From Mytilus californianus (taxonomy: Eukaryota): a DNA stretch of 64,000 nucleotides. The stretch is from positions 43,090,001-43,154,000 of the forward strand of contig NW_026262690.1 of NCBI RefSeq assembly GCF_021869535.1, written 5' to 3'. A program made the position numbers and the translations under genes. The notes beneath the pieces were generated by a model, which ran no database searches, was not told where the DNA came from, and saw only the letters and a program-made list of their open reading frames with translations. Shown here piece after piece: positions 15,132 through 38,089 of this stretch; within the stretch, counting starts at the first letter, position 1, and each line of letters begins with the position of its first letter.

Positions 15132-15188
15132 TCAAAATAATCCAAATAATGGGTTTGCATAGGCCATGGGTTTCACATTGGGATGTGG
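15132..15188 (-). CDS. PPP5C: PP5 exon 14 ([18 protein letters not shown]-stop)
   Basis: PP5-type C-terminal autoinhibitory tail; TGA at 15134-15132. Confidence 0.95.
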   Translation of the reverse strand, partial: PHPNVKPMAYANPLFGLF

Positions 15189-18100
15189 CTGAAATAAACA
15201 TTACAATTATTGGTTAAAAATATTTAAATACATTTAACATTTAAAATACTTACTACATGTTAATAAAGATAGAATTTACATAAAGAATATGAAATTTTCA
15301 TGTCATGTATACAGATAAATATAATGAATATCAGTCTTGTTAAGGATGTGTTTGATGGTCATTTCAATTAACATTTTATATGTAAAAGGGATACGACAAC
15401 AAACATAAGACTACAGGTCCGTAGCCATGAACTGGTATGTTCATAGTATACATAGTCCTCAGCCATGAACTGGTATGTTCATAGTATACATAGTCCTTAG
15501 CCATGAACTGGTATGTTCATAGTATACATAGTCCTTAGCCATGAACTGGTATGTTCATAGTATACATAGTCCTTAGCCATGAACTGGTATGTTCATAGTA
15601 TACATAGTCCTTAGCCATGAACTGGTATGTTCATAGTATACATAGTCCTTAGCCATGAACTGGTATGTTCATAGTATACATAGTCCTTAGCCATGAACTG
15701 GTATGTTCATAGTATACATAGTCCTTAGCCATGAACTGGTATGTTCATAGTATACATAGAAGGTTTGAATATTCTTAAATAAACACATATGTTGGTACCA
15801 ATAACTTAAAAGATTAGCTTTGTTTGAGGTGGTTAGGGTTGTTAACTATAATTCTCAATAGAATAATAAAGTATCTATTTCAATCACAGTTTGATAGCAA
15901 TAAGTCCAGCACATGATTTCTCAAAATATATTATTTCTATCTATCATCAAAGTTACTATTTTTAAAAGGGTGATGGCCATCTTTTTTTTAAAGAATGGGA
16001 TTAACTCTCATTATGGTAAAAAGAATTTTACAGCTTTTCTATAAAAGCATGCAAAGCAAACCTTTGATCAACTTGCTTGCTATGTTTGCTTGGATGTTTG
16101 CAAACAATAGGTAGGCGGAGTTTCAGTCTGTTTTGTATGTACTGGAATTTGATTAGACAATAAAAATTGACATGCAATGAAGTTTATGTTTATTGTCCAA
16201 TCAAATTCCAGTATATAGTAAACAGATTGAAACAGACTACCTACCTTTTGTTTACAAACATCCAAACAAACATAGCAAGCAAGTTGATCAAAGGTTTGCT
16301 TTGCATACTTTTATAGAAGAGCTGTAATTGTGTATTTAACAAAAGCTTTTTTTAAGGTAATTAGTCCTTTACATGATTTTCCAAACTATTTTATTAACTT
16401 TTTTGTCAAATTTACAATTTTTTAGTTACAGCAGCAGTCCATGAAGGATGATAGGTTCAAAAACCATTCTTCTAAAAGAGGATCATAAATTTATAAAATA
16501 AAGACAAATGCCAACCTGAACTAAGAAGTCCAAGCATGATTTTGAAATGGGAGTCAAAATAAGAACTGTGTGTCATTAATTTCCCTGTTCAATTTGTTAA
16601 TATAATGTTTGCTGTTCGTGTTAATATAATGTTTGCTGTTTGTGTTAATATAATGTTTGCTGTTCGTGTTAATTTAATGTTTGCTGTTCGTGTTAATATA
16701 ATGTTTGCTGTTCGTGTTAATATAATGTTTGCTGTTCGTGTTAATATAATGTTTGCTGTTCGTGTTAATATAATGTTTGCTGTTCGTGTTAATATAATGT
16801 TTGCTGTTCGTGTAAATATAATGTTTGCTGTTTGTTAATTCATTCCTGTCCTCTCTTTCATTGCAATACTATCCTTATCTTGATAAAACTGACTACTTAA
16901 TAAATTACTGGCAATAACAAACCATTTGTTGTGAAGTTTTAATTGATGGTCAATTTTTAGAACATCCAACTTACCACTGCTTCAAATGATGTGAATTTGG
17001 GGGTCAGGTCATCACCGGTGATATTGATAAAGGCTCCTTTATTTCCCATCTGATCACTGAAAAGGAAATAATGCTTTATATAGAAACTAAGTTAAATTTT
17101 AACAGTTTAAGTTGAATGTTTATGCAAATATGCAACCTGAAACTCTTTGTTTTAATGAGGAACTTTATAAATGTATTATAGCAACAAATATATGGAATAA
17201 TGTTTTCTTCTAATGAGTATTAAATGAAATAATTTTTCTTTAGGTAACAGTTATACACATCATATCATACATCAGAATTTTATCAAATACATTTAATGTG
17301 CACAACAATTTATTTTATTTATAATGGAAAAGGATCTAGGTTTCCGAGATAATGGGAAGAAAATTTCATAGCACAGATAGACAGACTGACAAAATAAAAA
17401 CAGTTTACCCCCTCACACAGAGCAGATTTGTTTAAAATATTTTCAAAATACTCTTTTATCTGGTACTAAATGACTGTGCTGAGTAAATTTAAAGTTCCTC
17501 TCATTCATGCAGCTGGCCTTAGACAGATTAAATCATTCTGATATAACCCTAAATACTGCAATCATATTACTATGTTGTGAACATTAACTTATGATTAGGA
17601 CCTTATTACACTGTTATTTTATATGATGACATACCAGTAATTAGGAGCTGAGAACACTGTTATACATTTGCCATCATGTATCACTTCATATCCTTCCTGT
17701 TTCACTTCATGACTCCTAACAATATAGTCCAATTTATTTTTCTGAAGAAATTTCTTTGTTACATCTGGTCCAAACATGGTCCCTACCCCTCGTTTACTGT
17801 CACTTGTCCCACACATCATCTGGGGATCAGACCATAACAGTTCACACATTGCTCCTGTTAATATTTATCAAAAAATTACATTTTATATCTTCCATTATAT
17901 TTATCCTGTAGAATCAATGACAAAATACATTATTTTCCCCTTGAAACACAGCTTAAAAGAACCAATCACTCAAGTTTTAGTTTCTGATATTGCAAGAAAT
18001 ATTTCAAATAACAAAGTTACTGGCAAAATAACTGCAATGCTAAGCTTAAAATCTCAACATGCTTATATCTGACAGCTAACCAACATCTACTTTAGTCTAA

Positions 18101-21100
18101 TGTGTTCTACGGTCACAATTTAGCAAATCAATTAAAATTAATTCTTTACATCTTGAATTACAAATATCTTTATATCCTGTTACAGTTAATTAAAATTTTA
18201 TAATAAACATAAAAAAAACCCATTACACTGTTTTAATAAAATGCTCCGCAGGGCGCAGCTTGATACGACCGCAGAGGTCGAACCCTGAACAGTTGGGGCA
18301 AGTATGGACACAACATTCAAGCTTGATACAGCTCTGAATTTGGATTGTGATTAAATATTTGACACAGCATAGGTTTCTGACACAGAATGAATGTGGTCTA
18401 AGAACTTAAAAATTTTAAATTGGACATTCACCTATTATGGTCCAATATCCAAAATCTAAATACATGGTTAGATTCAGCATATCAAAGAACCCCAAGAATT
18501 CAATTTTTGATGAAATCAAACAAAGTTTAATTTTGGACCCCGATTTGGACCAACTTGAAAACTGGGCCCATAATCAAAAATCTAAATACATGTTTAGATT
18601 CAGCATATCAAAGAACCCTAAAAATTAAATTTTTGTTAAAATCAAACTAAGTTTAATTTTGGACCCTTTGGACCTTAATGTAGACCAATTTGAAAACGGA
18701 ACCAAAAATTAAGAATCTAAATACACGGTTAGATTCGGCATATCAAAGAACCCCAATAATTCAATTTTTGATGAAATCAAACAAGGTTAAATTTTGGACC
18801 CTTTTGACCTCAATGTGGACAAAGTTGATAACAGGGCCCAAAAATCAAAAATCTAAATACATGGTTAGATTCAGCATATCAAAGAACCCCATATATTAAA
18901 TTTTTGTTGAAATCAAACAAAGTTTAATTTTGGACCCCGATTTGGACCAACTTGAAAACTGGGCCCATAATCAAAAATCTAAATACATGTTTAGATTCAG
19001 CATATCAAAGAACCCTATAATTCAATTTTTGTTAAAATCAAACTAAGTTTAATTTTGGACCCTTTGGACCTTAATGTAGACCAATTTGAAAACGGAACCA
19101 AAAATTAAGAATCTAAATACACGGTTAGATTCAGCATATCAAAGAACCCCAATAATTCAATTTTTGATGAAATCAAACAAAGTTAAATTTTGGACCCTTT
19201 GGACCTCAATGTGGACCAATTTAAAAACGGGGCCCAAAATCAAAAAACTTAATACACGGTTAGATTCAACATATTAAAGAACCCCAAGAATTCAAGAATA
19301 AAACCCCATTGAAATTGATCAAGAAATAAGCAATTTATACGAAGTATCTTCTTTTGCACAATACTGTGCAATTGAATATTTCTTGCTATTGCGCAATACT
19401 GTACAATTGACAATTTCTTGCTATTGCGCAATATTGTGCTATTGGATATTTCTTGCTATTGCGCAATACTGTGCAATTGAAGATTTCTTGCTATTGCGCA
19501 ATACTGTGCAATTGAAGATTTCTTGCTATTGTGCAATACTGTGCAATTGAAAATTTCTTGCTATTGCACAATACTTATTAGATAATAATTTACACATCCT
19601 GTTTGGTGTGTATCTCCTACCATATCATTATTATTTGCTTTTAAATATTAATCAGAAATAACCAACTTAAAATGGAAAATTTTAAAAGAAAAAAAAAAGG
19701 AAAAAAAGAAAAAAAAAGAAAAAAAAAAAATCCCCCCCCAAATTTTTTGAACCCCCTTATAATTCATCACCCCCAAACTCAATCCCAGCCTTCCCTTTGT
19801 GGTATGGTACCTTGCAGTACAATTTCAGAGAGATCCATACACTTGAACACAAGTTATTGTCTGGAAACTAGAAAAATGCTTATTTTTGGCCCCTTTTTGG
19901 CCCCCAATTCCTAAATGTTTCGGGCAATTACCCCCAAACTCAATTCCAGCTTTCCCTTTGAGATATGGAACCTTGTAGTACAATTTCAGAAATATCCAAA
20001 CACTTACACACAAGTTATTGTCATGAAACTAGAAAAATGCTTGTTTTTTGCCCCTTTTTTGGCCCCTAATTCCTAAAATTTTGAGGCAATTACCCCCAAA
20101 ATCAATTACAGCCTTTCCTTTGTGATATGGAACCTTGTGGTACAATGTCAGAGAGATCCATACACTTACACACAAGTTATTGTCTGGAAGTTACAAAAAT
20201 GCTTATTTTTGGCCCCTTTTTGGCCCCTAATTCCTTAACTGTTGGTACCATAACCCCCAAAATCAATCCCAACCTTCCTTTCGTGGTATTAAACCTTATG
20301 GTAAAATTTCATGGAGATCCATTCACTTAAACTAAAGTTAGAGTGCGAAAACCAATGTGTCTTCGGATGACGCCGGACATCGACGACGACGACGACATCG
20401 CCAACGTCATACCAATATACGACCAAAAAATTTTTATTTTTTGCGGTCGTATAAAAACTGCAACACCTACCACTTTCTGGAGGTTGTCTGTTACGATCTA
20501 CTTTCCGTAAATCATCTAACGTTACATTTTCATCCCTGAACAATCCTCCATGCATTAACTGTAATAAAAATATCATAAATTACTGTGTTCAAGCTATTGG
20601 TTGTAAAATGTTAAATAAAATTCATTGTTAACCCTACATATGTTCTCACAAATAATGTGAGAAACTTAATGAGTCAGTTCACATACAATCAAAATAAAAA
20701 ACATCAAAACTGGTTCAACATTTTTCTCATTCTACTACCACAGATATGAATAGTTGCAGCCTTCAGAAAATATTTTACAGTTTAAATTTTATTCATTTTT
20801 GTAACATTCATATGTATCCATGGTTTTGATTATATCAATCTTTATTTCAATAAATGGGAATCGCCGAAGAAATGAGTTGCAAAGACAAATGAATAGTGAT
20901 ATTTTACAAAGCCACATCCAATCCTCATAAATCGATTTAAATTCTTCTGATAATAATCCAAAGTTTTATTTAGAAACTTTCAATGGAATTGGAAGCTCTT
21001 ACAAGAAGTGGCAGCATGAATGATACCAGAGGTAATGAGAATCAACTGTCAAACTTTCAGTATTCTACTGTCATGACATTTATAGATTTCACCAAGGCAT

Positions 21101-24100
21101 GAAAGTATCCTTGGTTGACGTCATAAGATTAACAGACTGTTGGATATGTTTGGAATGTATTGTGTCTTTGTGTTGTCTCTTTGATGTATACCCCACATCT
21201 TCTTTTATTACCCTTTCGGAGCACCTGAGATCACCCCCAGTTTTTGGTGGGGTTCGTGTTGCTTAGTCTTTAGTTTTCTATGTTGTGTCATCTGTACTAT
21301 TATTTGTCTGTTTGTCTTTTTATTTTTGGCCATGGCGTTGTCAGTTTGTTTTCGATCTATGAGTTTGACTGTCCCTCTGGTATCTTTCGTCCCTCTTTTA
21401 TTCTTATCCAATTTTGTGTAATTATGTATCTGTGTCATGAGCAAATCCTTGATAACTGCCCTAGGGTTTATGATATAGGATTCACAGACTTCTGTTGACA
21501 TTTTTGATAGAATGTCGAGTCCCTCTAAACTTTGCCTGTTTACCTCTTGGAAATGTTTAGCAAAATATCAAAACCTTTGAAGGAAATTTTGCAAGATGAC
21601 CTTTTCAGGATTTTTTTAGAGCTTGCTATAAGAATATTTTTTCAATTACCAAGAAAAAATGTAATCAATACTTAATACATGTAAAATGAGCTAGTCTTTG
21701 AAAACATTTATTAATTAAAACAACAAGCAAATTGGCTTTAGGTGAGTTTTGATATATAAACAGAAAGAGTTTTCGCAGTAAATATTAGGATACAATGTAG
21801 CCTTAAAATGAACATTTCATATTAAACAACTAAAAATTATAGCTTCAATTTAACAAGTGGTAAGGATTATTAGAGAGATTTTGTTCAGTAAAGGAGATTT
21901 TGACCTACCTTAATTGAAACAAAAATTATGTAGAGAATCAATGCAATTGGGTAAACCCCTCCCCAAAGTGGTATGATTTCACTTAATAGATCTTCAACCC
22001 CAAACATCCTCTTAAACACTTATTAGTAAAGGTGCCCATAAACAGACATTTGGTAATTACTTACTAAAATTTTATTATTTATACAGTGACATAAAGGCAG
22101 CAAATTGAATATCTCTGTAAATAGGTCAGCCATTTTACTGCTGTATGTGGTATGTGTTAAGGATTATCTTTATTAACTAAATACACATTATATAACTTAG
22201 AGTATTGTTGATTCATTACTATTATATGGTTTACAAATTACAACCATTTTAAGGTCTCAAACAATATTCTAGTATTACAAAGTGTCATAATAATGTGGAA
22301 ATGACAGTCAATTGCATATTTGATCTAATATTAAATGATTGTGTGAAGAGATTTTTTCCTTAAAAGTAATGATGTACATGTATATTGATATTTTCCACTG
22401 ATTTTTTCAATTCATCCTGGAGTTAGCTTTATTTGTTATTCACTTTTTTATCATAGGTTTCTCAGAATTGGACAAAAATATAAAATGACAAAATTGAAAA
22501 ACAAGGCAGACAAACAGATGGAAAACTTTAAATCTAAAGGTAAATAATATAAAAGCATATTTTGATTTGACTTCTCCTTCAAAACCATACATCTGGTTCA
22601 TTGTTGCACTTTCATGATTCCCTAAAAATACAAATATAAAATAATTCCACAGAAGTTTTACTTACAATGCAGTGTATCTACATTTCCTTTATTTGATCAA
22701 TTTTTAAATAACAGAAGATATTACAGTACAATACATAACAAGAGTGCACACGCTGAAATGTCTCGCCTTCTTTACTAACCATTGATTTTATGTTGATAGT
22801 CCTAAATACAAAGCTTTACTACAAGTAACACATAAACTTAACATGATCCAAGAAAATGAGGTCAAGGTCAGATAAACCAAATGAGAAATACATGTACACC
22901 TTACAATCATTCAATAAACCAAACATACGGGTAGTTGACCTATTGCTTATTGTTTCTAAGAAACAGTCTTAAACAAGAAAACGTAACATTGACCGATGAA
23001 CCATGAAAATGAGGTCAAGGTCAGATGAACCATGCCAGACAGACATGTACACCTTACAATCAATTTAGGCATTAAATATAGTTGACCTATTGCTTATAGT
23101 ATCTAAGAAACAAACCTAACCATGAAAACTTAACATTGACCAATGAACCATGAAAATGAGGTCAAGGTCAGATGATACCTGCCGGACAGATATATACACC
23201 TCACAATCCTTCCATACATCAAATATAGTTGATCTATTGCTTATAGTTGAAGAAAAACAGACCAAAACACAAAAACTAAACACTGAGAAATGAACCGTGA
23301 AAATGAGGTCAAGGTCAAATAAAACCTGTGAGACTGACATGTACATCATTAAATATTTCCATACACCATTTATAGTTGACCTATTGCATATAGTATTAGA
23401 AAAAAAGACCAAAACTCTAAAACTTAACTTTGACCACTGAACCATGAAAATGAGGTCAAGGTCAGATGACACCTACCAGTTTGACATGTACACCCTACAA
23501 TCATTCCATATACCAAATATAGTAGACCTACTGCTTATAGTATCTGATATATGGACTTGACCACGAAAACTTAACCTTGTTCACTGATCCATGAAATGAG
23601 GTCGAGGTCAAATGAAAATTGTCTGACGGGCATGAGGACCTTGCAAGGTACGCACATACTAAATATAGTTATCCTATTACCCATAATAAGAAAGAAATTA
23701 ACATTACAAAAAATGTTGACTTTTTTTTCAAGTAGTCACTGAACCATGAAAATGAGGTCAAGGACAATGGACATATGACAGACGGAAACTTCGTAACATA
23801 AGGCATCTATATACAAAGTATGAAGCATCCAGGTCTTCTAGCTTCTAAATTATAAAGCTTTTAAGAAGTTAGCTAACGCCGCCGCCGCCAGATCACTATC
23901 CCTATGTCGAGCTTTCAGCGACAAAAGTCGCAGGCTCGACAAAAACCAAATTTACTGAGCATATCTTAGTAATATCTTTAATAAAGGAGACAGAGGGCCT
24001 CAATGGCATAAGTTTAAGTAGTTCTTCTTCAGTGATCGCTATAGCCTATCAACTCTAAAGTGGCGAGGTATGTTCGACTCTGAATTTAATTGAAAAGTAT

Positions 24101-27100
24101 TGCCAGTTTTCTTGCTAGATGTCAATGATTCTCTCAAGGTACCCTGGCTACCTCCACCAATAATAAAGAGCTGCACCATGAGCGCATGATATGCCCATTC
24201 CTTTTTCAAAGAATAATGTTCCATAACTCCTCAATGTCATATCAGAAATTTATAAAAAAACTAAAGGGAGCTTATTTTAATTGATATAAACCAGTTACCA
24301 AAGTTTCATGAAAACTGCTCAAAGCATTTTGAGTTACCGGTATTGTCAGAAAACTGGAAAATCCCCTTTTTTAATGAATAAAACCCCAAAACTCAGAAAC
24401 ATAAAATCAAAAATTTATAAAAATCGAAAGGGAGCTCACGTAAATAGATATAACAATTCACCAAAGTTTCATGCAAATTGGTCAAAGGGTTATTGAGTTA
24501 TTGTATGACATGTTGACAACGAACAAACAGATGGACGGATGGACAACGGTATACCATAATACGACCCGTAAATGGGCGTATAAAAACTAACCGCTATGAT
24601 ATAGTTAAAATCCATGAAAGTGGAATGAACCACAACAAACAAACAATTTTACAAGGGTTATGGGTGAATATGAGGTTGTAAATTAACTCAAGGGACAATC
24701 TTAACCATGCTGAAAGTTAGTTATAAGCTCAATTAAAACCTTCAAATAATTGACATGAAAATGAATAGAAGGTCAAATGCAGGGTTAAACATAGACTTGA
24801 AAATAATTTTTTTTGCTTCTTCTCCACTAAGCATGGGGAACTAAGGACTAGGAGCAGTCTGGTAAGCTTAGAATCATAATAATGTGTCCTGGTCTTCTTG
24901 CTGACTGTTACCTTGTGAACTACCACATTAAAAATCCAGCTGAGCGTGTCAGACTTTTACAAAGCAGGGTTCATATGCACAACACATTAACATTTTCTAG
25001 TCCTGGTATGCATGTAATATAAGCCACTGGATGTCAAAAACCTATTCATCATCATCAACATCATCATGTATCTTTTTGTTTGGTGTGTTGTATTTTTTGG
25101 AAGATTTTATTTGATAAGGTGTTGTATCATTGACTAGTTCCTTATTGAATATCAGATAAGACATTGTTCCTCTGATGCATGGTTATTTCCCAGGTTTTAT
25201 TGTCTCATGTACATCTATCCTAAATCATTCCTCCCCCTCCAAATACTTCTGGCAATAACTAAATATTAAATTCATTTGAATTATACAGTTTTATCAGAAA
25301 ACTTACCCCTGGCCATATAAAAACTATCTGGATACAAAAGCTTAAAACTAAATAATACAAATATACATTCTACTGAGAATGACCCTCGGTCTACAAAATC
25401 ACCATTAAATAACTGAACAAAGGTTAAGGAATTTCTACTTATATAATTTTACAGCCCATATTTCAAGGATGTTTCACCTTTAAAAGGGTAATATGTTTTC
25501 CAGAATATGAATTGAATTCTCAATGCTATATTTTCTTACACACTTCATTGTTGTTTCTAAAACAATGTTGATACTATTTGTGTATGTTAACTTTACATAG
25601 AGATACAAGCTAAATAGCAGCGAAACAGCAACCCAACAACACATAACAGGACAATATGATCCAGTGGTGGATTAAGGGGGCGTAGAGGTCGTAAGCACCC
25701 ATTTCAATATAAGTTATATCATTTTTAGCATAAAATCGTCCAAATTTTTTTCATATATTTTGTTATCTTCAATTATGCCCCCTTAAAAAATCATTGATCA
25801 GCCTCTATGATCAAACAGCTTTTTGATATTTATAATCATTTCATTCAAACTCTATAATACCACTTAGTGTCATAAATTTTTGTAAGCTGATGTTATAAAG
25901 GATACATAAGGATTATCTACAGAAGGTAAACCATTTAACTTAAATATATTAAGTAGATCATAATACTGCCCATGTATATCCCCACATATAGTAAACTTCT
26001 GTCCCTGAAAATAGAAATCATTTCATTGATTACATTTCGTTTTTATTAAGTCCAATAACTGATACGCAGATATACAGAAGAAATTAAATCTTTAGATCAA
26101 TTATGTGAATTTGTGTTCACAAAGTTAACTTCTTTTGAGAACTGCAGTAAAATAATTGCTTTTTTTTGTAAGTTTATGAGTAAATAATTCATAAAAATAC
26201 TGTTTATTTATTTTAAGTTGTATCTATATAGGTAGAATGGCAACTAAGAGATCTGAATCAAAAGTCAATAATACAGAATTTTGTATAGGCTATTAACCTT
26301 TATTGTAGACAATGAAATTAGTGTCAACAAGCAGATACATCAAAACAAGCCATTTTCTTCCCTATGCCTGTATTTTCTTCCCTATGCCTGTATTTTCTTC
26401 CCTATACCTGTATTTTCCTTTATTATTGGCATGAAGAAGTGATTTACTGAAACATCACAAAGCCAGGATACTTCAAATGAAATTTTTAGATGAAAATAGT
26501 CCATTGTGTTCATCTTACCTTTGGCACATCTATATCAACAAGTGAAGGTAGATCTTTAAACAGTTCTTTAATTTGCAATAATATCTGAAAATAAATCACA
26601 GATAAAAAGTAACAAATATATAAAATTACATAACTGTATCTTTAAATAAATAAAGTAAATGCAACATCAATATACCCATATGTTCATACTTTAGGGAATA
26701 CAATGTATAAATGTTGCAGTAAAAGGTTTGTGCACTTGTGAGTGATATTTGTATGTTAGAAATAAAACTGAATTTTGTGATGAACAAAAAATATTATACC
26801 ATTGAAAAACACATGATAGTAAAAGACAATTCATATGTAAATGGAAATAAGTTATATTAAAAGGTAAATTCCTAAGCATTACCACCTGCATGTAAGATAG
26901 CTCTCATTGAAGAACATCAAGTAAAGGTTCACACGCACAGTTCTTTATATCATTTTTGATGTATTTCATAATATTTTTGTTACCTTTACCTGATATCCAT
27001 CTTTTAAATACTTTAATCAAGTATTAAGCAAATGCATGTTCTATTTAGTACCCTAGTTTTTTTAACAGATAACAAAACATTACTTACCTTTATTCAACCT

Positions 27101-30100
27101 CATCAATAGTTGTACTTATTTGAAATGATCTGTTTAGGGGAATACTCTGAGTGCATTTTCAGAGAATATATACTATGTAATAATTACATTACATATATGT
27201 TTCATTATCATACATTATTTTGATTGGCTAACAGCAATCTCGCGTCATTCTGAAACCAACCTTCATTTCAAAATGAAATGTAACATTCATGATGACACGA
27301 GCTTCCACAATAAAGTGCACAGGTAAATAAAAGAAAAACTTGATAGAAATCGTGTTTTCATGATCCTAGCAAAAAAATGCAATTATAAGTATTAAATGCT
27401 TCTTTTAGTAACTTTATAGGGTTGTAAAAGCGTTGACTGTCATGACTGTGCGCACATTTTTAGAATGAATCGCTTCCGTGCTTCATACAAAATGTACTTC
27501 TGTCACAAATTTACAAAAACAAGCATTCAATTCTTAAATAAATACTTTTCTAACAGATTTTAACCAGTTTTTAAAGTCTGGAGGTAAATGGGGACATCAA
27601 GTTACAGGCTAAAGAATACTTTCAAAAGGTCAAATCTGCTAATCTTGAAACTGATACAAGATTACAATTAGATGTATGGAAAGCCTTTTTGTTTATTCTA
27701 TTATTAATGAAAATAATTGAATGGAATAACAGGGGCAGTTCAATTTACTTCAATTTGGTTTAGTGGAATATTATAATTCAAATCCTAAACTATAAGGGAC
27801 AGGGGTCTTTTACGGATTTTTCTTATAAAGTGCACGTGATAAATACATTTTTTACCTGGAATGCAAATCTACTGTGTAATTTCTTCTGGTCTCTAAATGT
27901 ATCAAGTAAATCTTGTACAAATTTAAGTGTAACCTGTCCGTTCTCTAAAACTGGTCCTGAGTAGTCTCCCTCAATTGCTACAAATCAAAACAATACATGT
28001 GTTAATATAAAGTTAGAGAAGATCATAAAACATTGCAAGACAATGCTTTCAAATCTAACAGTTCTCTAAAATTATTCTATATGTATAAACACCGTACCTA
28101 AGAACAAGAACATATTCTTTTAATAGTCTTTTTTAGACGAAAAAACTAAAATCTACATATTGGAAGACAAAGTATGAAAATTTTACCCACAGAAAGTTTG
28201 GTCATGATAAACCTAATAGCTTTCATTATACATACTCAATGACTCCAAGTCAATAGTTTCTGACACGGGTTTCTCTTCCACTGCAATAGCCTTCTCAAAG
28301 GCTATTCTTTTAACAATTTTGCCACATTCATTAAACTTTGCCCTTGCATCTTTATCACTTGGCTTCACTTTCACAACCTGAAAATATAGGTATTAATTTA
28401 ATGTTGTAACTCCAATCCCGTCCCCTTTTCCCGAATGTGACCTACCGAATTAGACTTATTACCGGGTTTGTACTAACATGAGCAACATGACGGGTGCCAC
28501 ATGTGGAGCAGAGTCTGCTTACCCTTCCCGAGCACCTGAGATCACCCCCAGTTTTTGGTGGGGTTCATGTTGCTCAGTCTTTAGTTTTCTATGTTGTGTT
28601 TTGTGTACTATTGTTTGTCTGTTTGTCTTTTTCTTGTTTAGCCATGTCGTTGTCAGTTTATTTTCGACTTATGAGTTTGAATGTCCCTTTAGTATCTTTC
28701 GCCTCTCTTTTACATTATAGCGTTATCATTTATAAACAGAGTGTACAGAAAAAGACATGGGTACAGGTGTCACTGTTAAAATACTTTAAAAAATGGTAAA
28801 GTCTAATAATTCTAGTAATAAGCTATTGACTCAGAGATATGTCTGGCCTCTTAAAATAGCAATACTTTAACATGTAAAATATGCAAAATATTTAAGTCAA
28901 TGAACTAAGACTGAAGGTACAGGGTCTAATGAATTCCCTGGAAATAAGATATGTCAATACTTATTCAACTGCATACCAAATTTCATTGACTTATCATAAG
29001 TGGTTCCCTTTAAACTGACCTAATCACAAACTTTAACATGTTACCTATGCAAAAGTTTCCAAGTCAATAAACCATGACTGAAGGCATAGGGCCTAATAAT
29101 TTTCCTGGAAATAAGATATGCCAATGCTAATACAACAGCATACAAAATAGCATTGACTTGTCATGAGTGGTTCCCCTTAAAGGGACCTAATCACAAACTT
29201 TTAACTAATTATTGATGCCGCCGCAAAGCGAAACAGCACACATGAGGGGGAATGCCCTTTACCGTCAAACGGTCATTTTCGGCTACCGTTAGCATCAAAA
29301 TGGTTAAAATTTTATCGTGATTCGTCAAAATATTCTTATCGAGATTCATCAACGGTCTCAAATAATTATCTTTTACTGTTATTTTTGGAAAAAATTTAAC
29401 GTGATTCATCAAAAGCAGTCAATTTTTTTTTTAACATCATTAAGAAAATGTACATTTCATCGTCATCCATCAAATTACCGTTGACGTCATTAGGCAAGAT
29501 TTTTTACCATTATTTGTCATGAAGGTACCCCCATTGCAACCTCATACATAAGCCTCCATTAAGGGAAGATAAAAAATTGTTAAATCAAAATGGTTGTAAA
29601 ATACGGTCAACTACACGATTGCAAACAATTCTTCTAAATATGAGAGTTTTCGGTCAAACCTTCTCAAAGGAGTTGTGTTCCTAAAGTGTTTTGAACTAAC
29701 CAAAGGTCTGACGGATACTATTACAATATTCCCACAGTGCGACGCGGAATGACAATAAACTGCTTGATAAACAGAACTTTAGAATTGACCTTAATATAAA
29801 GTGATTCTCCACATTGGCCTCTGCTATAAAACTCATACAGGTCTAGAATATCTGTGGTACAGTGCATTGTGGAGGCCATGACTAATTCTACCTGTGGTAC
29901 CATGGACCATGAAATGACTTGCTTAAAATAAGGTCAGTTTGCAATAACAGCATTGGTCCATGGAATATATACCTGATACCCCACCTGCTGCCAGACTGGT
30001 ACATCACTACATGTCCATTGTAAGAGGCCATGTTTACCTCTACTTCTAGTACCATGGCCCATGCTAAGCATCATTTATTCACTTGAAATACTGTAAATTC

Positions 30101-33100
30101 AGAAATTATTGTAATGTTTTTATTATTGCGAAAAATGCGACAGGGTTATAATCGCAATAATTTAAACTTGCATTTTGAAATTTTTATCTAAATTAAACAA
30201 GATTTTTCTCAATATCGCAAAAATTAGAATCGCATTTTAGTCTAAAATGACAAAATGGCAATAATAAATGCACGCAATAATTTCTAAATTTACATTAGTA
30301 ATGTTAATTGAAGAACAAATTTTTAAAAAGTAAAAATAATCATATAATGCTTACAGCTTCAAAATCTTTCAATGCAAGTTTGAATTTCCCCAGGGCCATG
30401 TTAGCTGATGCCCTTCTGTAGTAAGCCTGAAAAATACATAGAAGAATGTAATAAAATTATTATCGTGACTTTCCAACCATTGACAGGATGTATTACATGT
30501 ATTTCCTACTGTCAATTCCAATCAAATCTCCTCAGTTTTTGTCATTATTAGATTTAACTTTGAAACAGAATACAGATAATCTAGTTCCTACTGGCCCATT
30601 ATTTTCAGAGGAGAAATTTTTGAAAAAATTAAGACCTACAAACAGAAACTAAATGAAAGTATCATCTCACTCTAGACTGGTAAGCTAACAAATAATGTTT
30701 TTGAAAGCTTAAAAACTGTATATTGACCTGCAATTGTAAGCAATAAGTTAATTCTGGTCAAATGCATCTTAAAAGTTTTATTAACATAATGATTGGACAT
30801 CGCATGTCTATAAATGGGGGTACTAGATATCATTCAGTGGTCCAGCTCTGGTAATATTATTTGCAGGGGAACTAACTCAAAGGTTATGTTGGTAGAGCAT
30901 AGTCTAGTTTCCTTTGGCAATACAGTTTTAATTAATAGTCAATAAAACTTAAAATTGGATTTTCATATATTAATCATTCACAAATAGATATATTGTACAT
31001 ATTTACATTGCATGTCATCTTTGAATTAAACATCTCTAGGTCATCATGATTTGATTCAATCCTCAATTATGAAAACTTCAAATAAAAAGAGTTCATTGTA
31101 TATAACAATGTAGAATAACACTTTTTCAGATCCATCTTTCTCAAACCTCAAAAAACTACACTTTTCAAACAATCATCCATTTTATATTATTAGCTACCAA
31201 ACCAATCAAAATACACAACTTCCAAAAAGGGAGAGGGGGTATCTTTTAATTCCACTAATTAAACTATAGTCCCTTAGATACCTTTTTATTAATTAACACT
31301 TTTAAGGTAAAGAATTAATTATGTAAGAAAATAAAACATCTTTATCCTGTCTACAATAGGAAATGGCTTATAAGCTTACAATTGCTATTTGACTGATAAT
31401 CAAACATAGTATAATCTTTTAAAGGTAATCAAAATAATTGCACAAGTATTAATGCCTTAATCCCTAATCCAGAATTTAGAAATCTATGCCTAATTATGAC
31501 ATTATTTATACATGTAAAAAGTCAAAACATAGTCTTGACATATTCATCTCAAGCACTGAAATTAAGCATTATAAACAAATATAGATTTGCTAAACACAAT
31601 CATATGCAATTTTTGCTAATGAAAAATTGGTGGTACCTACTATAAGATAAAAATGACACTGGCATTTTTAAAATTCAAAATTGAAACAACAAACCTTTAT
31701 GTAAGATCTGTCCAACTGTAATGCCATAGTAGCATCAGTTAAAGCAAGACCAAACATTTCTGTTTTGATGTAAGCAAAGCTTCTGTTTCCAAAATATGCT
31801 GCTACATGAGGCCATTTTTCAATAGCTTGGCTGTACAATTCTATTGCCTTTACATAGTCTCCATCTAATATATATAATATAAACTATTATCAACACAATA
31901 CATATTTTTATATAATATTACCTGTTAAAGTGTTAATACAAAAGCATTATTTCATGGATTACATTTACAGGACCATGAACCAGTACTTCCTTATAATGTC
32001 TTCAAAGTTTCAAATTGCACGTTTGAATAACAAGATTTACAGAGAAACAGAAATTGCCAAGGGAGATATTTTTATAGCCGATTTAGCTATTTTAGCTAAA
32101 ACTGCAAATAAACAATGTGTATTAAAGTTTGTTGTATACATGGTATATATGTGTGAAAAAAATATGATCTTTATGATATTTCTGTGTAATTTTTTTTAAC
32201 TTTAATCACAATTTAAGGGGGCAGTATGTGTCTCAATAAATTTATCAAAAACTAAGTTTTACTGGAACTACATGTAATACAAGAAGGGACTTTAAACTTC
32301 TAGCAATAATCAACAATTGCTTGATTTTTCAAGCCCAAGAGCTACTTATATAAAAATAAGGAGATGAGGTATGATTGCCAATGAGACAACTATCCACCAA
32401 GTTCAAATAAAGTAGATGTAAGCATTTATATGCAACCATTTGGCCTTCAACAATGAGAAAAGCCCATACTGTATAGTCGGCTATAAAAGGCCCCAAAATG
32501 AATAATATGAACAATTCAATTGAGAAAACTAACGGCCTAATTTATATCAAAACAGTTAACGAAAAAACAAATATGACAGACATGAACCAACGACAACCAC
32601 TGAACTACAGGCTCCTAATTTGGAAAGGCGGGGTTTAACATGTTTGTGAGCGCTCAACCCTCCCCTAACCTGGGACAGTGGTGTAACAGCACAAGATAAG
32701 AAAAAACTATAAAAATCGTGTTGAAAAAGGCTTAACTCATCAGACCGATTCAAAGCAGAAAAAACATCAAACATAAACACAGAATGGACTTGGCAGGGTA
32801 TTTATCCATCCCTCATCCCTAACAACAAAAAAGGACACTAAGAACAGATCTGAGACTACTCGCAGTTACTGACAGCTACATGTAGTTCAAAGCCAATAAC
32901 AACTATTAAAAAAAATTTGTTCTTTTCTTTTGATCTACACTACATACAATTATTCTGTCTCAAATATAAATTATTATGAATAAGCTAGATGTGGTTTTTT
33001 TAGAGAAAAAAAAAATAGAATCCGTATAAAACAAGAGGCTCATGAGAGCCTGATATCGCTCACATGTAATTTCAGTTTCAGACATTTGACTTATTTGTAG

Positions 33101-36100
33101 ATCTTACTTTGCAGAACAATTTTGTCATTTACACTTTCTCTCTTTCTTAAATAATATTAAATAACCCAAAACTTTAAAATTTCCTAAAAATTAACCATTT
33201 CTGGACAGTAACCCAACAATAAGTTGTCCTATTGGTCTGAAGATTACTTGACAGGTAAAAATAAACTATTTCCAACAGTAACCCAACAATGGGTTGTCGA
33301 ACTTGTCTGAAAATTTCATAACAGATAGATCATGAACCATTTATTACTTTAACTCCATTTCACTTTTGCTCTAACTGCTGTAGTTTTTGAGATATAAGAC
33401 AAAAACTGCTTTTGTCCCCTATGTTCTATTTTTAGCCATGGTGGCCATGTTTGTTATGGATCAAAACTTCGGATACAATTTATAAACTAGATACCCTAAG
33501 GAACATTCAGTTAAAGTTTGAAGGTATTTGGCCCAGTAGTTTCAGAGGAGAAGATTCTTGAAATAGTTTACGACGACAACAGGCGACAACGGACGCCAAG
33601 TGATGGCATAAACTCACATGGCCCTCAAAGGGCCAGGTGAGCTAAAAAGGAATGCAAGGACAGTCTATCTTACTTTTAAATCAAAGCTACATGGATCTGA
33701 TTCACTAGGGACAATAAGCAAAATTTGTAAGTTACCTAGTCTAAACTCATAAAAATGCAATAAAACAGCTATGTGTTATTCAATTTATCATACTGAATGT
33801 TCTATTGTTATTGTCTTTTAAATTTTAAATTGAAAGTACTTAACTATGATGTCATGTACATACCAATATTACAGTTATTAGAAAAACAACAAAAGTGAAG
33901 CAAGATGTATTTTCTATTTTGACAGTGAATGAAAAAGTTCTGAGGCCAAAAATATAACTTGCGAATTGTCTTTAAAATTATTGATGTAAATTTAATTCAT
34001 TGTCTTTTGATTCATCGATTTTTGATTGGTCTGCAGGAGCGGTTGACATTCAAAAAATTGTCTCCTGCTGAGCCATGGGATAAATTATGGGTAGGTCTTT
34101 TCACCGCCGAACACCACTGCACACCATCGAACACCGCCAACCACCCCAAACGTGAATTGAAACTATGAAAAAACACTTATGTGTTTCAATAAAAGCAGAA
34201 AACTGTTGAATTTGTTGATTTTTTTATCGCAATTTCAAAGAATAATTAAACGGAGAATACACATAGCGTTTGTGAGTCTATTTATTACGTTATTGTTTCT
34301 GTGAATCAAATACATATATATTGAAGTCATTATTAATTTTTTTCAGATTCATTGTCTATTTCAATACAATTATTGAAGGTATTTTTTTGGTCCTGGGCAG
34401 ATGAATTCTTTTTTTATTTTGTTCAATATATATATTTACGACAAAAACTGTTTTTCAAATAATATTTAGAGAAAGTGTCGATATAGGAAAGTTTTTTTTT
34501 ATTCTGGACAAAAACGACACTTCATCGGATTATTAATTTACTGAACAATTTCAGAACACAGGAGCTTGGACGACAAAAACTGTTTTCCAAATAATATTTC
34601 GAGAAATTGCCATTTAAGGAAAGTTTGTATTCTGGACATAAACGACACTCAATTCATCAGAATATTACTTTACTTAACAATTTCAGAACATGGGAGCTTG
34701 GATGACATACATGTGTTCTAAATGTATGATAAATCAATTTTAGCCTGACAAACGTCTGGAAGGGGGGATTAACAAGATTAAACGTGATAATCGCCAATCA
34801 AACAAATTCAGGTTTTTGACCAACCAAAATTCCTACAGGTAATGCCAAATGCAGCACATGTATCCTCAAAAATGGGAAAAGTATAATGTAATTTAGTTTT
34901 AAATTATTTTGGGGTGTTTGGCGGTGAAAAGACCTACCGATAAATCATCTCCCTTGTATTAGCCAATCAAAATCTGTATAATAAACTTGTTTATTCACAG
35001 TTTCATTTTCATATAATAGTATTTGATATTTGTACATGTATATTTGGGTACAAAAATGTGTGTTTTAAATAATGAAAAAACCTCCATATCATTAAGAGAT
35101 CAATAACTTAAATTCTTAGAAAAAATGCATTTTTCAATACTATTTTTATGAAAATTATAAAACAAATATTCCGTAACAAATAAACTATGCCACCCTATGA
35201 GACGTCCTCTTTTCAACCATATAAAGTAATTAATACAACAAATGATGAATTCATTCACCTTACGAAATTAAAATATTTGAATGATTTGCAAGGATGGATT
35301 CTCTAAATATATGAACACCAGGAATACAACTAAAAAATGAAATTATGGAATTGAGATTATGAAAATTGCCCTATGCCACTCTTAACAATCATTTCTCTTC
35401 AAATGTCATATTTTTAATTAATACCAAAAGGCAATCCTAAGACATGTAAGAGTTAGATATATACTACTAAGACCAATGGTTAAACAGAGAAATGCTCCGA
35501 AACAGTCATTAACATTCAATTTTGTGGAGCAATGAAATTAACGAATATTCTTAAACAAGTCCCTTTATATATAATGGTCCCCATTTGTATCAAAATTTTG
35601 AAACGAGGGATGGGATTATTTGTTCACACTACTTGACGAGTGAAAAAAGATGCATGATTATATTCTGCATCTCTTCCTTACTATGTCTGCAAAGCTTCAT
35701 ATTGCACTTCCAAATGATAAGCAAGAGACAAAAATTTCATTAAAATATTTGCCAAGGGAGATAATTTGTAGCCTTCTTAAGCTTATATAAGCTAGATATG
35801 TAGATTTGCAAAACTCCTAAATAGAATCCCAATAGTCTGGTAAATCTATTCATTTTTTTTAATAACCATTAAATGAACGGACTTACTGGACAAACAAAAT
35901 TACCCCCCACCATCCTTTTGTGTCTTGACCTGGTGGATCATTATGTAATACCAGGGCAATAAAAATAGAGATATAAAAATACTGGTACAATACTGGAATA
36001 GAATTTTACACCAGCATTAGTAAAAATAGCGTGGTATAACAGTATTAGGATCTCCAAGCACTGGAGATTCCTTTTTTCTTTGACTCATAATCTGCTAATT

Positions 36101-36284
36101 TGCATCAACACTGCACATAGAACTGACAAATATACGTAAGGATAACTGTGAAACTTGTTTTACTTTTGAAAAACTCGTTTGCCGCTTCTTTCAGTTTTTC
36201 TGCTTCTGCTTTAAGCTCCTCTGGTGATTGTTTGTTTAGTATTTCCTCGTCTTTTTCCTTCTCTTCCACATTTTCAGCATCCAT
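15132..36284 (-). CDS. PPP5C: Serine/threonine-protein phosphatase 5 (TPR domain plus PPP catalytic domain), 14 coding exons, 495 aa
   Basis: Exons 36164-36284, 31695-31864, 30355-30426, 28236-28377, 27856-27977, 26519-26584, 25906-26004, 25307-25412, 22561-22621, 22065-22146, 20471-20558, 17635-17854, 16975-17056 and 15132-15188 join in frame (1488 nt, all phases compatible). Contains the TPR repeats, GDIHGQ, GDFVDRG, RGNHE, HGG, RSHE and SAPNY motifs, and the C-terminal [12 protein letters not shown]. Confidence 0.97.
15422..15758. repeat. Minisatellite, 38-bp unit, about 9 copies (PP5 intron 13)
   Basis: Unit tagccatgaactggtatgttcatagtatacatagtcct. Confidence 0.95.
16031..16324. mobile_element. 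Foldback MITE (Tc1/mariner-like: TA flanks, CAG...CTG ends)
   Basis: Arms of about 135 bp are near-complementary; flanks read ta|cagc...gctg|ta. Confidence 0.75.
16597..16838. repeat. Minisatellite, 24-bp unit, about 10 copies (PP5 intron 13)
   Basis: Unit ttaatataatgtttgctgttcgtg. Confidence 0.95.
16975..17056 (-). CDS. PPP5C: PP5 exon 13 ([27 protein letters not shown])
   Basis: tttcag acceptor, GTAAGT donor. Confidence 0.95.
17635..17854 (-). CDS. PPP5C: PP5 exon 12 ([11 protein letters not shown]...RSHE...SAPNY)
   Basis: LWSDP, RSHE and SAPNY motifs. Confidence 0.97.
18235..20457 (-). mobile_element. HINE-like element, family A, near full length, in PP5 intron 11
   Basis: Terminal subTIR and hairpin, two internal satellite-like arrays and a 35-bp minisatellite. 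Confidence 0.85.
19356..19575. repeat. 35-bp minisatellite, about 6 copies, inside the family A element
   Basis: Unit tgcgcaatactgtgcaattgaagatttcttgctat. Confidence 0.9.
20471..20558 (-). CDS. PPP5C: PP5 exon 11 ([29 protein letters not shown])
   Basis: HGG motif; GTAGGT donor. Confidence 0.96.
21206..21400 (+). mobile_element. 3' tail of Penelope-like element (subfamily 1), in PP5 intron 10
   Basis: ggagcacctgagatcacccccagtttttggtggggttcgtg...; matches 40650-40825. Confidence 0.75.
22065..22146 (-). CDS. PPP5C: PP5 exon 10 ([27 protein letters not shown])
   Basis: AC acceptor preceded by TCCTTAAC; GTAAGT donor. Confidence 0.93.
22147..22560 (-). other. U12-type AT-AC intron (PP5 intron 9)
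   Basis: Donor ATATGCTTTT, branch site TCCTTAAC (22163-22156), then 9 nt ending in AC. This is the only junction found that restores EVKSKYSSKM. Confidence 0.88.
22561..22621 (-). CDS. PPP5C: PP5 exon 9 ([20 protein letters not shown])
   Basis: GNHE motif; followed by the AT-AC intron. Confidence 0.95.
22737..23945 (-). mobile_element. HINE-like element, family C (gtcgagcc...agctcgac, (ggc)n, core tandem repeats of about 160 bp)
   Basis: Repeated gaaccatgaaaatgaggtcaaggtca units; minus-strand end ...gtgtgcactcttgtt. Confidence 0.8.
24161..24586 (-). mobile_element. HINE-like element, family E (atacgccc...gggtcgtat)
   Basis: T-run, subTIR with inverted repeat, (tcca)/(tccg) microsatellite, 3' gggcatatcatgcgctcatggtgcagctctt. 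Confidence 0.65.
24800..24970 (+). mobile_element. Decayed MetaSINE-like fragment
   Basis: agaatcataataatgtgtcc...aaaaatccagctgagcgtgtc resembles 61700-61840. Confidence 0.45.
25307..25412 (-). CDS. PPP5C: PP5 exon 8 ([13 protein letters not shown]...FYMAR)
   Basis: GDxVDRG motif; GTAAGT donor. Confidence 0.97.
25413..25905 (-). other. U12-type GT-AG intron (PP5 intron 7)
   Basis: Donor GTATCCTTTA; branch site TTCCTTAAC (25431-25423) ends 10 nt before the 3' end; no long polypyrimidine tract. Confidence 0.93.
25906..26004 (-). CDS. PPP5C: PP5 exon 7 ([18 protein letters not shown]...DNPY)
   Basis: GDxHG metal-binding motif; followed by the U12 donor GTATCCTTT. Confidence 0.97.
26351..26418. 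repeat. 20-bp tandem repeat, about 3 copies
   Basis: Unit tattttcttccctatgcctg. Confidence 0.85.
26519..26584 (-). CDS. PPP5C: PP5 exon 6 ([22 protein letters not shown])
   Basis: ttcag acceptor, GTAAGA donor. Confidence 0.93.
27383..27541. repeat. Imperfect palindromic repeat in PP5 intron 5
   Basis: The arm aagtattaaatgcttcttttagtaa pairs with ttacaaaaacaagcattcaattctta. Confidence 0.5.
27856..27977 (-). CDS. PPP5C: PP5 exon 5 ([13 protein letters not shown]...SRFAFQ)
   Basis: ttgtag acceptor, GTAAAA donor. Confidence 0.95.
28236..28377 (-). CDS. PPP5C: PP5 exon 4 ([15 protein letters not shown]...IDLESL)
   Basis: tttcag acceptor, GTATGT donor. Confidence 0.95.
28405..28712 (+). mobile_element. 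3' tail of Penelope-like element (subfamily 1), about 27 nt from the exon 4 acceptor
   Basis: Colinear with 40530-40825, directly downstream of the RT relic. Confidence 0.75.
30091..30298. mobile_element. MITE with TIRs and TA flanks (Tc1/mariner-like)
   Basis: ta|ctgtaaattcagaaattattg ... caataatttctaaatttacattag|ta. Confidence 0.7.
30355..30426 (-). CDS. PPP5C: PP5 exon 3 ([24 protein letters not shown])
   Basis: tttcag acceptor, GTAAGC donor; TPR3. Confidence 0.95.
31695..31864 (-). CDS. PPP5C: PP5 exon 2 ([14 protein letters not shown]...DRSYIK), TPR
   Basis: AG/GT boundaries; peptide matches PP5 TPR1-2. Confidence 0.95.
32335..32910 (+). repeat. Same interspersed repeat family, in PP5 intron 1
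   Basis: Colinear with 43256-43885. Confidence 0.85.
33030..33648 (-). mobile_element. HINE-like element, family B, in PP5 intron 1
   Basis: Ends similar to 12008-13068. Confidence 0.75.
34089..34939. mobile_element. Non-autonomous TIR element with 9-11 bp TSD (Mutator/MULE-like)
   Basis: TIR ggtaggtcttttcaccgccRaacacc (25/26 match); flanks ataaattat and ataaatcat. Confidence 0.7.
36164..36284 (-). CDS. PPP5C: PP5 coding exon 1 (MDAENV...AANEFFK)
   Basis: ATG at 36284 (alternative in-frame ATG at 36296); donor GTAAAA, phase 1. Confidence 0.85.
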
Positions 36285-38089
36285 GCTTAGTAACATCAAA
36301 GAGTTCAGTCAAAGGGAAACAACTCATTACAAAACTTTGTATGGAGGGCAGACTTACAATTTTCTTGGTCTAGGCAGGAACATATATATTGACATACTGT
36401 TCCCAGGTCTAGGCTGAGACTACTCTATACAAAACCGGTCTAGGTCATACAAATCTACAGTCTTAGGTCAGAAGAGTTTCACCTATCGTAAATTCGCCTA
36501 TTTTTTCATATAAAACACATTTTTAATAAATATTCTACCAGTGAAGATTTTCTTGGACAAATGGAATGAATTTTATTTTCATTAATGTCTGCAGTTTCGT
36601 GTAATATATTTATGATTTATAGTTTCAGGGAAATCACTGTTTAAAGAAAAAATGAATTTCTGCAAGAAAAAAAATCATTTGGCTATATCGGAAAAAAATA
36701 CAGTAAGTTTCTATATTTGTATAAACTGAATAATGATTTCTCAGTAATGACAAGTCATAAAAATATTTCATAATAACCATAACAAACTGTACACATTTAT
36801 GAGTTTAACATTCAAAATTTCATCAAAATTGGGCCTCAAATAAGGTTTTGACAATGTTTTTAAAAATGTGATACCAAAATGATTATATCACCATAGTCCT
36901 GGACTTTTTGATAAAGTTTGGTGGATTGTTATTTCGCCGGACCAACTAATTGAGCACCTCTACATACTGGTCGACTGGTTTTTGTATTCATATGAAGCAT
37001 ATTTCATACACTATCTACTCAAAGACAAAAGAAGAGAAAATCCTGAAAATTTCTTTTATTTCACTTTCAGATCAATGATATATTTTCATTGATGAATGAT
37101 TTATAATGATTAATGATTAATGGTTGATGATCAATAATTAATGATTTATGATACCTGTACCCACTCAATAACCGTAGACCTGCTGACATTTCAGTGAGTG
37201 TTTGTCTTCTTTAGATGCTCTGTCAAAATGGGTTAAGGCTGTGAGGTAATTGCTACAAATTACTAACTAAAAAACTGAATAGGTATACGAATATTCATAT
37301 TTCATTGATCTTAAAGACCCAAAGTTGCTATAAGCTGTAGCACATGTCCTATCTCCTTGACAAATATGCTATTGTCCTGCAGATAAAGCCCAAAACAATA
37401 TCGTGTTTGCGTGTAAATCACATAACATATTCTGCTTGATAAATTGATTTATCAGGTATAAATAATTCACTCAGATGTCGATTCTGAAAAAAAATCTTTG
37501 CTAAGATATGCTGGAGCACATACAACGAGAGTCTCTTTCCTGCTGCAATTATATTAAAAAAAAACACTTTTCTACCCTTTACACAACTATTACCCCTTTC
37601 AAACTTAAAGACAGATTAAAAGAATTGGTCCAACTTTGTTTCATAAAATCGGATGGTCAACATAGACCTTGTTTTTGGGAGAGATAAATCCTACTTTGTA
37701 ACAATGAAAAAAATATCTCTGAAATTGACATTAGGGACTGGTCATTTGTTACACGAAGAGGGAGTGGGAGAAAAATAAGGGGGCCTTAAAAAAAAATTTA
37801 GGAATGGAAAGGGGTATCCACAATTTTAATGCTTCAAATGGAGGCGTCGAAATGTTTATACATTTTTACAAGACAGATTTGAGCTATCCTTTATTTCAAA
37901 CATGCAAAAACTATAGCCATTAATTCATTATTAGCTGATTTAATTAATACACTAAATCAGTATCTGATTGACTGATTATTCAGCAGGAGTATATAACACT
38001 TGATCCAGGTGTCATTGCTATACCTGTTTCATGTATGTCAATACCTTTCTCTGTTTGTTTTTTGAACATGAAACCGTTTTCAACTGATT

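Follow-up and report, generated by a model that had tools for sequence, protein, structure and literature searches.

The single-copy PP5 gene of Mytilus very probably contains an old, U12-dependent AT-AC intron, the normal donor of which is ATATCCTT and in which a G at donor position +5, most likely hypomorphic, is segregating. The intron, referred to as intron B, lies at 22147..22560 on the minus strand of the window, which is the whole 64,000-nucleotide stretch of Mytilus californianus DNA analyzed here (GC content of about 32%, no N). It is a known kind of intron, and represents neither a new type of element nor a lineage-specific regulatory design. The host gene is PPP5C-like and has 14 coding exons on the minus strand at 15132..36296, the ends being approximate; it was traced by tblastn of Mytilus PP5 proteins and by the mRNA contig L016. 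The best protein match to the gene is M. californianus XP_052057709.1 (P0273), and the M. californianus RefSeq protein gives the best tblastn fit to the exons of the window. In searches with single exons, exon 9 matches solved PP5 with an E value of 1.4e-5, and a later exon matches PP5 best (E 1e-32), ahead of rdgC, PP1, and PP2A.

Intron B is 414 nt long, has phase 2, and is located inside the Lys codon of ..EVKSK/YSS... The upstream exon 9 (22561..22621, minus strand, 61 nt) encodes 20 residues and the AA of Lys, holds the catalytic GNHE motif, and has GTCAAATCAAA as its 3' end at 22561. The downstream exon 10 (22065..22146, minus strand, 82 nt) opens with ATACAGCAG at 22146, and contributes A, the third base of the Lys codon, and 27 residues before a GTAAGT donor. 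The 5' splice site is ATATGCTTT at 22552..22560 (minus strand), as compared to the consensus ATATCCTTT and to ATATCCTT in the orthologues. Over positions +1 to +9, it matches the consensus ATATCCTT(T) at eight of nine bases, the mismatch being G at +5 (C at 22556 on the plus strand), while the other allele and all orthologues examined match fully. The U12 branch-site motif TCCTTAAC is located at 22156..22163 (minus strand); the probable branch nucleotide is the A at 22157, at a distance of 10 nt from the end of the intron. The motif is followed by nine bases, ACATACCAC, which include the terminal AC and lead to the intron end at 22147. The 3' region is A-rich and lacks a polypyrimidine tract, and the branch spacing falls at the ~10–15 nt characteristic of U12-type introns.

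Exons 9 and 10 align to residues 127-147 and 148-174, respectively, of solved human PP5 (3h60 and others). As residues 147 and 148 are exactly contiguous, the two exon halves abut without loss or gain. Enumeration of the protein-correct cuts yielded five equivalent placements inside an ATA(Y) repeat present at both borders, and AT...AC is the sole one of the five with recognized termini. GT-AG alternatives were rejected by hand and by enumeration, as none of them keeps the frame. Judged by its sequence, intron B is a genuine U12-type AT-AC intron without which the PP5 frame cannot be completed, and its removal would depend on the minor spliceosome. The donor and branch motifs prove nothing by themselves: one-mismatch RTATCCTTT occurs 53 times in the window vs 54 expected, and TCCTTAAC 7 times vs 2.5 expected. 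The evidence lies in their placement at the exact exon junction and in RNA. When intron B is retained, the read-through frame (22440..22560, minus strand) adds 39 codons after Lys and stops at 22442..22440, upstream of the HGG and RSHE exons. The initial annotation had described a frame completed only through an AT...AC intron, a branch site 9 nt from the intron end, G at +5 of the donor, and about 40 extra codons with a stop before HGG and RSHE upon retention; all four descriptions are borne out by this structure, with the branch site at 22163..22156 and the retention length at 39 codons.

RNA and protein data agree with the junction. L016, a 3,602-nt contig assembled from the public run SRR13891809, covers each of the 14 exons at 96.5-100% identity and skips every intron. 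It reads ...GTCAAATCAAA joined directly to ATACAGCAGT, and thereby links 22561 to 22146 exactly at the junction proposed in the initial annotation. L016 differs from the window by ~2% and stems from another allele or the sister species, and the nucleotide-level junction rests on this contig. It also carries an unrelated upstream open reading frame with MAM/Sushi domains (L016:178-1869), and is probably a chimeric transcriptome contig; its PP5 part aligns cleanly to the window. The RefSeq PP5 proteins of M. californianus, M. edulis, M. trossulus, and M. galloprovincialis share an identical 12-residue stretch across the junction. Raw RNA reads from this organism (X21) and an RNA contig set (X15) cover the exon bins and have a depth of 0 in the interior of intron B. 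The small depth in the bin beside the donor equals the amount expected from the 3-nt ATA overhang. The depth profile of X21 and X15, which is shallow and pools the alleles, contains no retention of the intron.

The G at +5 (22556, minus strand) has a canonical counterpart in the same organism. In the DNA run X3, which comes from another individual of the same organism and from another study, a 1,328-nt contig carries the canonical letter, resulting in the donor ATATCCTTT, with a depth of 7.61 out of a total of 15.4 at 22556. The contig depths are flat means, and a second X3 contig with the window letter is implied by the total of 15.4 vs 7.61; both alleles are therefore present in X3. The run X9 from the sister organism has only the canonical letter at this position (47.9/47.9). 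Two deposited proteins that wrongly read through the donor independently point to C. M. coruscus CAC5396199 (P0274) continues as KSKYPFVLF.. and M. galloprovincialis VDI09845 (P0194) as KSKYPF.., so that the codon is CCT in both, in place of the GCT of the window (KSKYA). The PP5 region is single copy in the assembly, which rules out a second gene copy or a haplotig as carrier of the C allele. Since both letters occur in the same organism, the relatives have C, and the region is single copy, the +5 G is most likely a derived single-base allele that segregates with the canonical C, being neither fixed nor, most likely, an assembly error. The initial annotation had taken the non-consensus donor as a feature of the intron or lineage, a view contradicted by the presence of both letters in X3, of C only in X9, and of ATATCCTT in all orthologues examined. 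Its G at +5 has thus been recovered by implication in reads of another study, together with the canonical C.

We then inspected the minor-spliceosome machinery of the genome. Three U6atac, three U11, three U12, and one U4atac genes all score above the Rfam cut-offs. The U11 5' start AAAAAGGGCC is found in 3/3 copies, and GAAAGGAGAG, including G14/G15, is kept in 3/3 U6atac copies. Compensating snRNA variants for the +5 G, which the initial annotation had considered, are ruled out, as the pairing boxes of U11 and U6atac are canonical in all copies. Two of the U11 genes, G000:C13:36902481-36902607 and G000:C13:37802723-37802849, have identical alignments to the Rfam model and lie 0.9 Mb apart in opposite orientation; the third copy, on C154, is diverged. 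The U6atac copy on C99 may be a pseudogene, to judge from a deletion of 2 nt and a G>U substitution in its conserved 5' region.

These snRNAs allow the likely effect of the G allele to be assessed. In the P120 intron, the donor change CC5/6GG abolishes U12 splicing, and only U11 GG6/7CC combined with U6atac GG14/15CC rescues it (PMC4980772); these published functional data concern the +5/+6 double mutant rather than +5 alone. Since the rescue involves both snRNAs, +5 would normally be base-paired to a G in each of them, and a G at this position would create a G-G mismatch in both helices. A crude calculation with the genome's own snRNA ends puts the U11 duplex at -6.1 kcal/mol with C and -4.7 kcal/mol with G, and the U6atac duplex at -7.6 and -3.8 kcal/mol, respectively. 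The best predicted duplex of the G allele is out of register, and five contiguous U11 pairs remain at +6 to +10 (CUUUU). In a set of ~1,330 minor-intron donors from mouse and human, ATATGC does not occur and GTATGC occurs once, as a low-scoring entry. As mismatches are expected in both helices, the G allele would most likely be a weaker (hypomorphic), possibly retention-prone splice allele, the unspliced product of which would end ahead of the HGG and RSHE motifs. On this analysis, weakened splicing is more likely than a neutral allele that splices normally; a complete failure of splicing is a further possibility. Neither allele of the donor found a match in a scan of metagenomes, and exact database look-ups of the read-through open reading frames and of protein P0194 returned no record.

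Other explanations of the +5 G can be weighed against this reading. It could be an assembly error or a private somatic or sequencing artefact in a species that has only ATATCCTTT, which would fit the C found in every relative examined and in one X3 contig, as well as the near absence of +5 G from catalogued donors. We consider this very unlikely, because the study behind X3 differs from the likely source sample of the assembly and its total depth is about twice that of the C contig, pointing to a second contig with the window letter; outside the assembly, the G allele is carried by this one run. More remote still is the proposal of the initial annotation that the intron is weak and rate-limiting, i.e. 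that a fixed, lineage-specific weak donor makes intron B a regulated step of PP5 expression. Minor introns are often slowly spliced, and retention would truncate the enzyme. In addition, low-level retention values are tabulated for the other minor intron of mouse Ppp5c (Olthof 2019 tables, PMC6717393). Nevertheless, this proposal is extremely improbable, since the canonical allele segregates in the same organism and is found in all relatives examined, U11 and U6atac are canonical without adaptation, and the RNA depth in the intron interior is zero.

More weight is due to the possibility that the G allele exists but is neutral in practice, because the U residues at +7 to +10, together with the exact branch site and with proteins contacting the donor, suffice for it to be spliced about as well as the C allele. 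The five contiguous U11 pairs that remain favor it, and with +6 to +10 still paired to U11, a single +5 change may be tolerated. Furthermore, the allele has turned up two times, once in the assembly and once in X3, and is thus not vanishingly rare, and RefSeq models on the M. californianus assembly use the junction. Bivalves, however, carry many deleterious segregating alleles, so that being sampled twice is weak evidence. The near invariance of +5 across the ~1,330 donors, the loss of about half of the predicted energy of the U6atac duplex, and the loss of U12 splicing in the +5/+6 double mutant (PMC4980772) also speak against neutrality, which we regard as possible but unlikely. The hypomorphic G allele is hence the reading retained here.

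The age of intron B was examined in orthologous loci, which were retrieved after a representative search with one exon and one word search, and cover bilaterians only, with one species per outgroup phylum. Another Mytilus assembly (L008) carries the AT-AC intron at an identical codon and phase, with ATATCCTT and CCTTAAC near the terminal AC. The intron, with ATATCCTT, CCTTAAC, and AC, is found at this very site, in the same phase, in Pinctada imbricata (L009), Haliotis rubra (L010), and the spider Oedothorax gibbosus (L014). It is absent, with contiguous coding sequence, from the annelid Owenia (L011), the brachiopod Lingula (L015), the hemichordate Glandiceps (L012), and a vertebrate-type locus (L013, GCA_048418815.1), the protein of which differs from human PP5. 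Given its presence in molluscs and the spider and its absence elsewhere, intron B looks, by parsimony, to predate the split between molluscs and arthropods and to have been lost several times. The initial annotation had left open whether the intron is lineage-restricted or is ancestral and was lost in vertebrates. The spider locus contradicts the former, and the latter is the better of the two options, with the ancestry reaching back, among the loci examined, to the mollusc/arthropod ancestor. The statement in that annotation that human PPP5C lacks an intron here is consistent with the contiguous sequence of the one vertebrate-type locus.

Human PPP5C and mouse Ppp5c are both catalogued as having a minor intron (Olthof et al. 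2019 supplement, PMC6717393; Minor Intron Database), a point missing from the initial annotation, with the donors TAT/GTATCCTTC in human and TAT/GTATCCTCA in mouse (PMC6717393 supplement). A full-text literature search for PPP5C with 'U12-type' returned nothing, and the catalogue entry stood only in a supplement (PMC6717393). As judged from this supplement, the source of all human and mouse intron data used here, the catalogued mammalian intron corresponds to a second U12-type intron of the mussel gene, intron A, which is located after ..NPY and is different from intron B. Intron A (25413..25905, minus strand, 493 nt) is of the GT-AG subtype, and runs from ..DNPY/GTATCCTTT to TTCCTTAAC followed by 10 nt ending in CAG. 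It is spliced out in L016, is kept in the other invertebrate loci examined, and has a matching branch site, ATCCTTAAC, in the vertebrate-type L013. The mammalian minor intron and intron B share the gene family and the spliceosome. They differ in that the former is GT-AG, has phase 0, and is located two exons upstream, whereas intron B is AT-AC and falls outside the mammalian list. Nor does intron B share the position of the mammalian intron, its own site ..KSK/Y.. being contiguous in L013. The idea that it is the mammalian intron 'slid' by 4 nt, as suggested by the TAT/GTATCC donor, is ruled out by intron A after ..NPY. Because an intron of the catalogued type is also present in the window at 25905..25413, the mussel PP5 gene, as read from its sequence, has two minor introns two exons apart, of which vertebrates keep only the upstream one. 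In Lingula anatina (L015, ~4104), intron A has a degenerate donor, GTATCTTT, read as TAC/GTATCTTTT with T at +6, and the branch site AACCTTGAC; by its sequence, this donor is a further natural deviation, within PP5, from the consensus of U12-type donors.

Several deposited bivalve PP5 models are faulty (P0002, P0155, P0194/P0281, and P0274). The model of Tegillarca granosa skips three exons (..SRG/IMCELL..), that of Pinctada imbricata lacks VKSKYT owing to splicing at a cryptic GT, YPFYFSK is inserted in M. galloprovincialis VDI09845 and VDI09844, and M. coruscus CAC5396199 runs into the AT-AC intron. Exon skipping, use of a cryptic GT, and reading through the intron have thus made several deposited models wrong at the AT-AC junction, which is therefore useful for testing annotation. 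The introns of the gene also contain very high-copy repeats at 22737-24730, 21185-21578, and 20200-20593, with contig depths of 1e5-1e6 in the DNA runs, and these repeats are also transcribed. A contig from the sister organism passes directly from 22736 to 23941, so that ~1.2 kb of the 22737-24730 block seems to have been inserted only in the organism of the window.

Intron B resembles AT-AC U12-type introns such as intron F of P120/NOP2 in having AT...AC termini, a ATATCCTT-type donor, TCCTTAAC ~10 nt from the 3' end, and no polypyrimidine tract, in a genome equipped with U11, U12, U4atac, and U6atac genes. The window allele departs from them by its +5 G, which is essentially absent from catalogued donors, while the other allele is fully canonical. 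As a single-base change within the nine conserved donor positions, which U11 and U6atac read, the G allele is comparable to disease-type minor-intron donor variants (SCN5A c.392+3A>G, PMC13602164) and to the experimental P120 CC5/6GG mutant (PMC4980772). Unlike these disease and experimental variants, it is natural, occurs in a wild invertebrate, and has an effect that is predicted.

The finding that an apparent non-consensus donor is a polymorphism calls for caution in scans of a single haplotype in highly heterozygous animals. PP5 in molluscs and a spider has two minor introns, one of which is kept in vertebrates, and this adds a dated case of minor-intron loss. The G allele is usable as a natural experiment on donor position +5. 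Tentatively, G may be a common natural variant, segregating in wild mussels, that weakens the splicing of a conserved phosphatase gene present in a single copy. If the G allele is spliced normally, +5 would be dispensable when +6 to +10 pair fully. If it is a splice-weakening allele, heterozygotes would provide an in vivo, internally controlled test of the role of the +5 C in recognition by U11 and U6atac.
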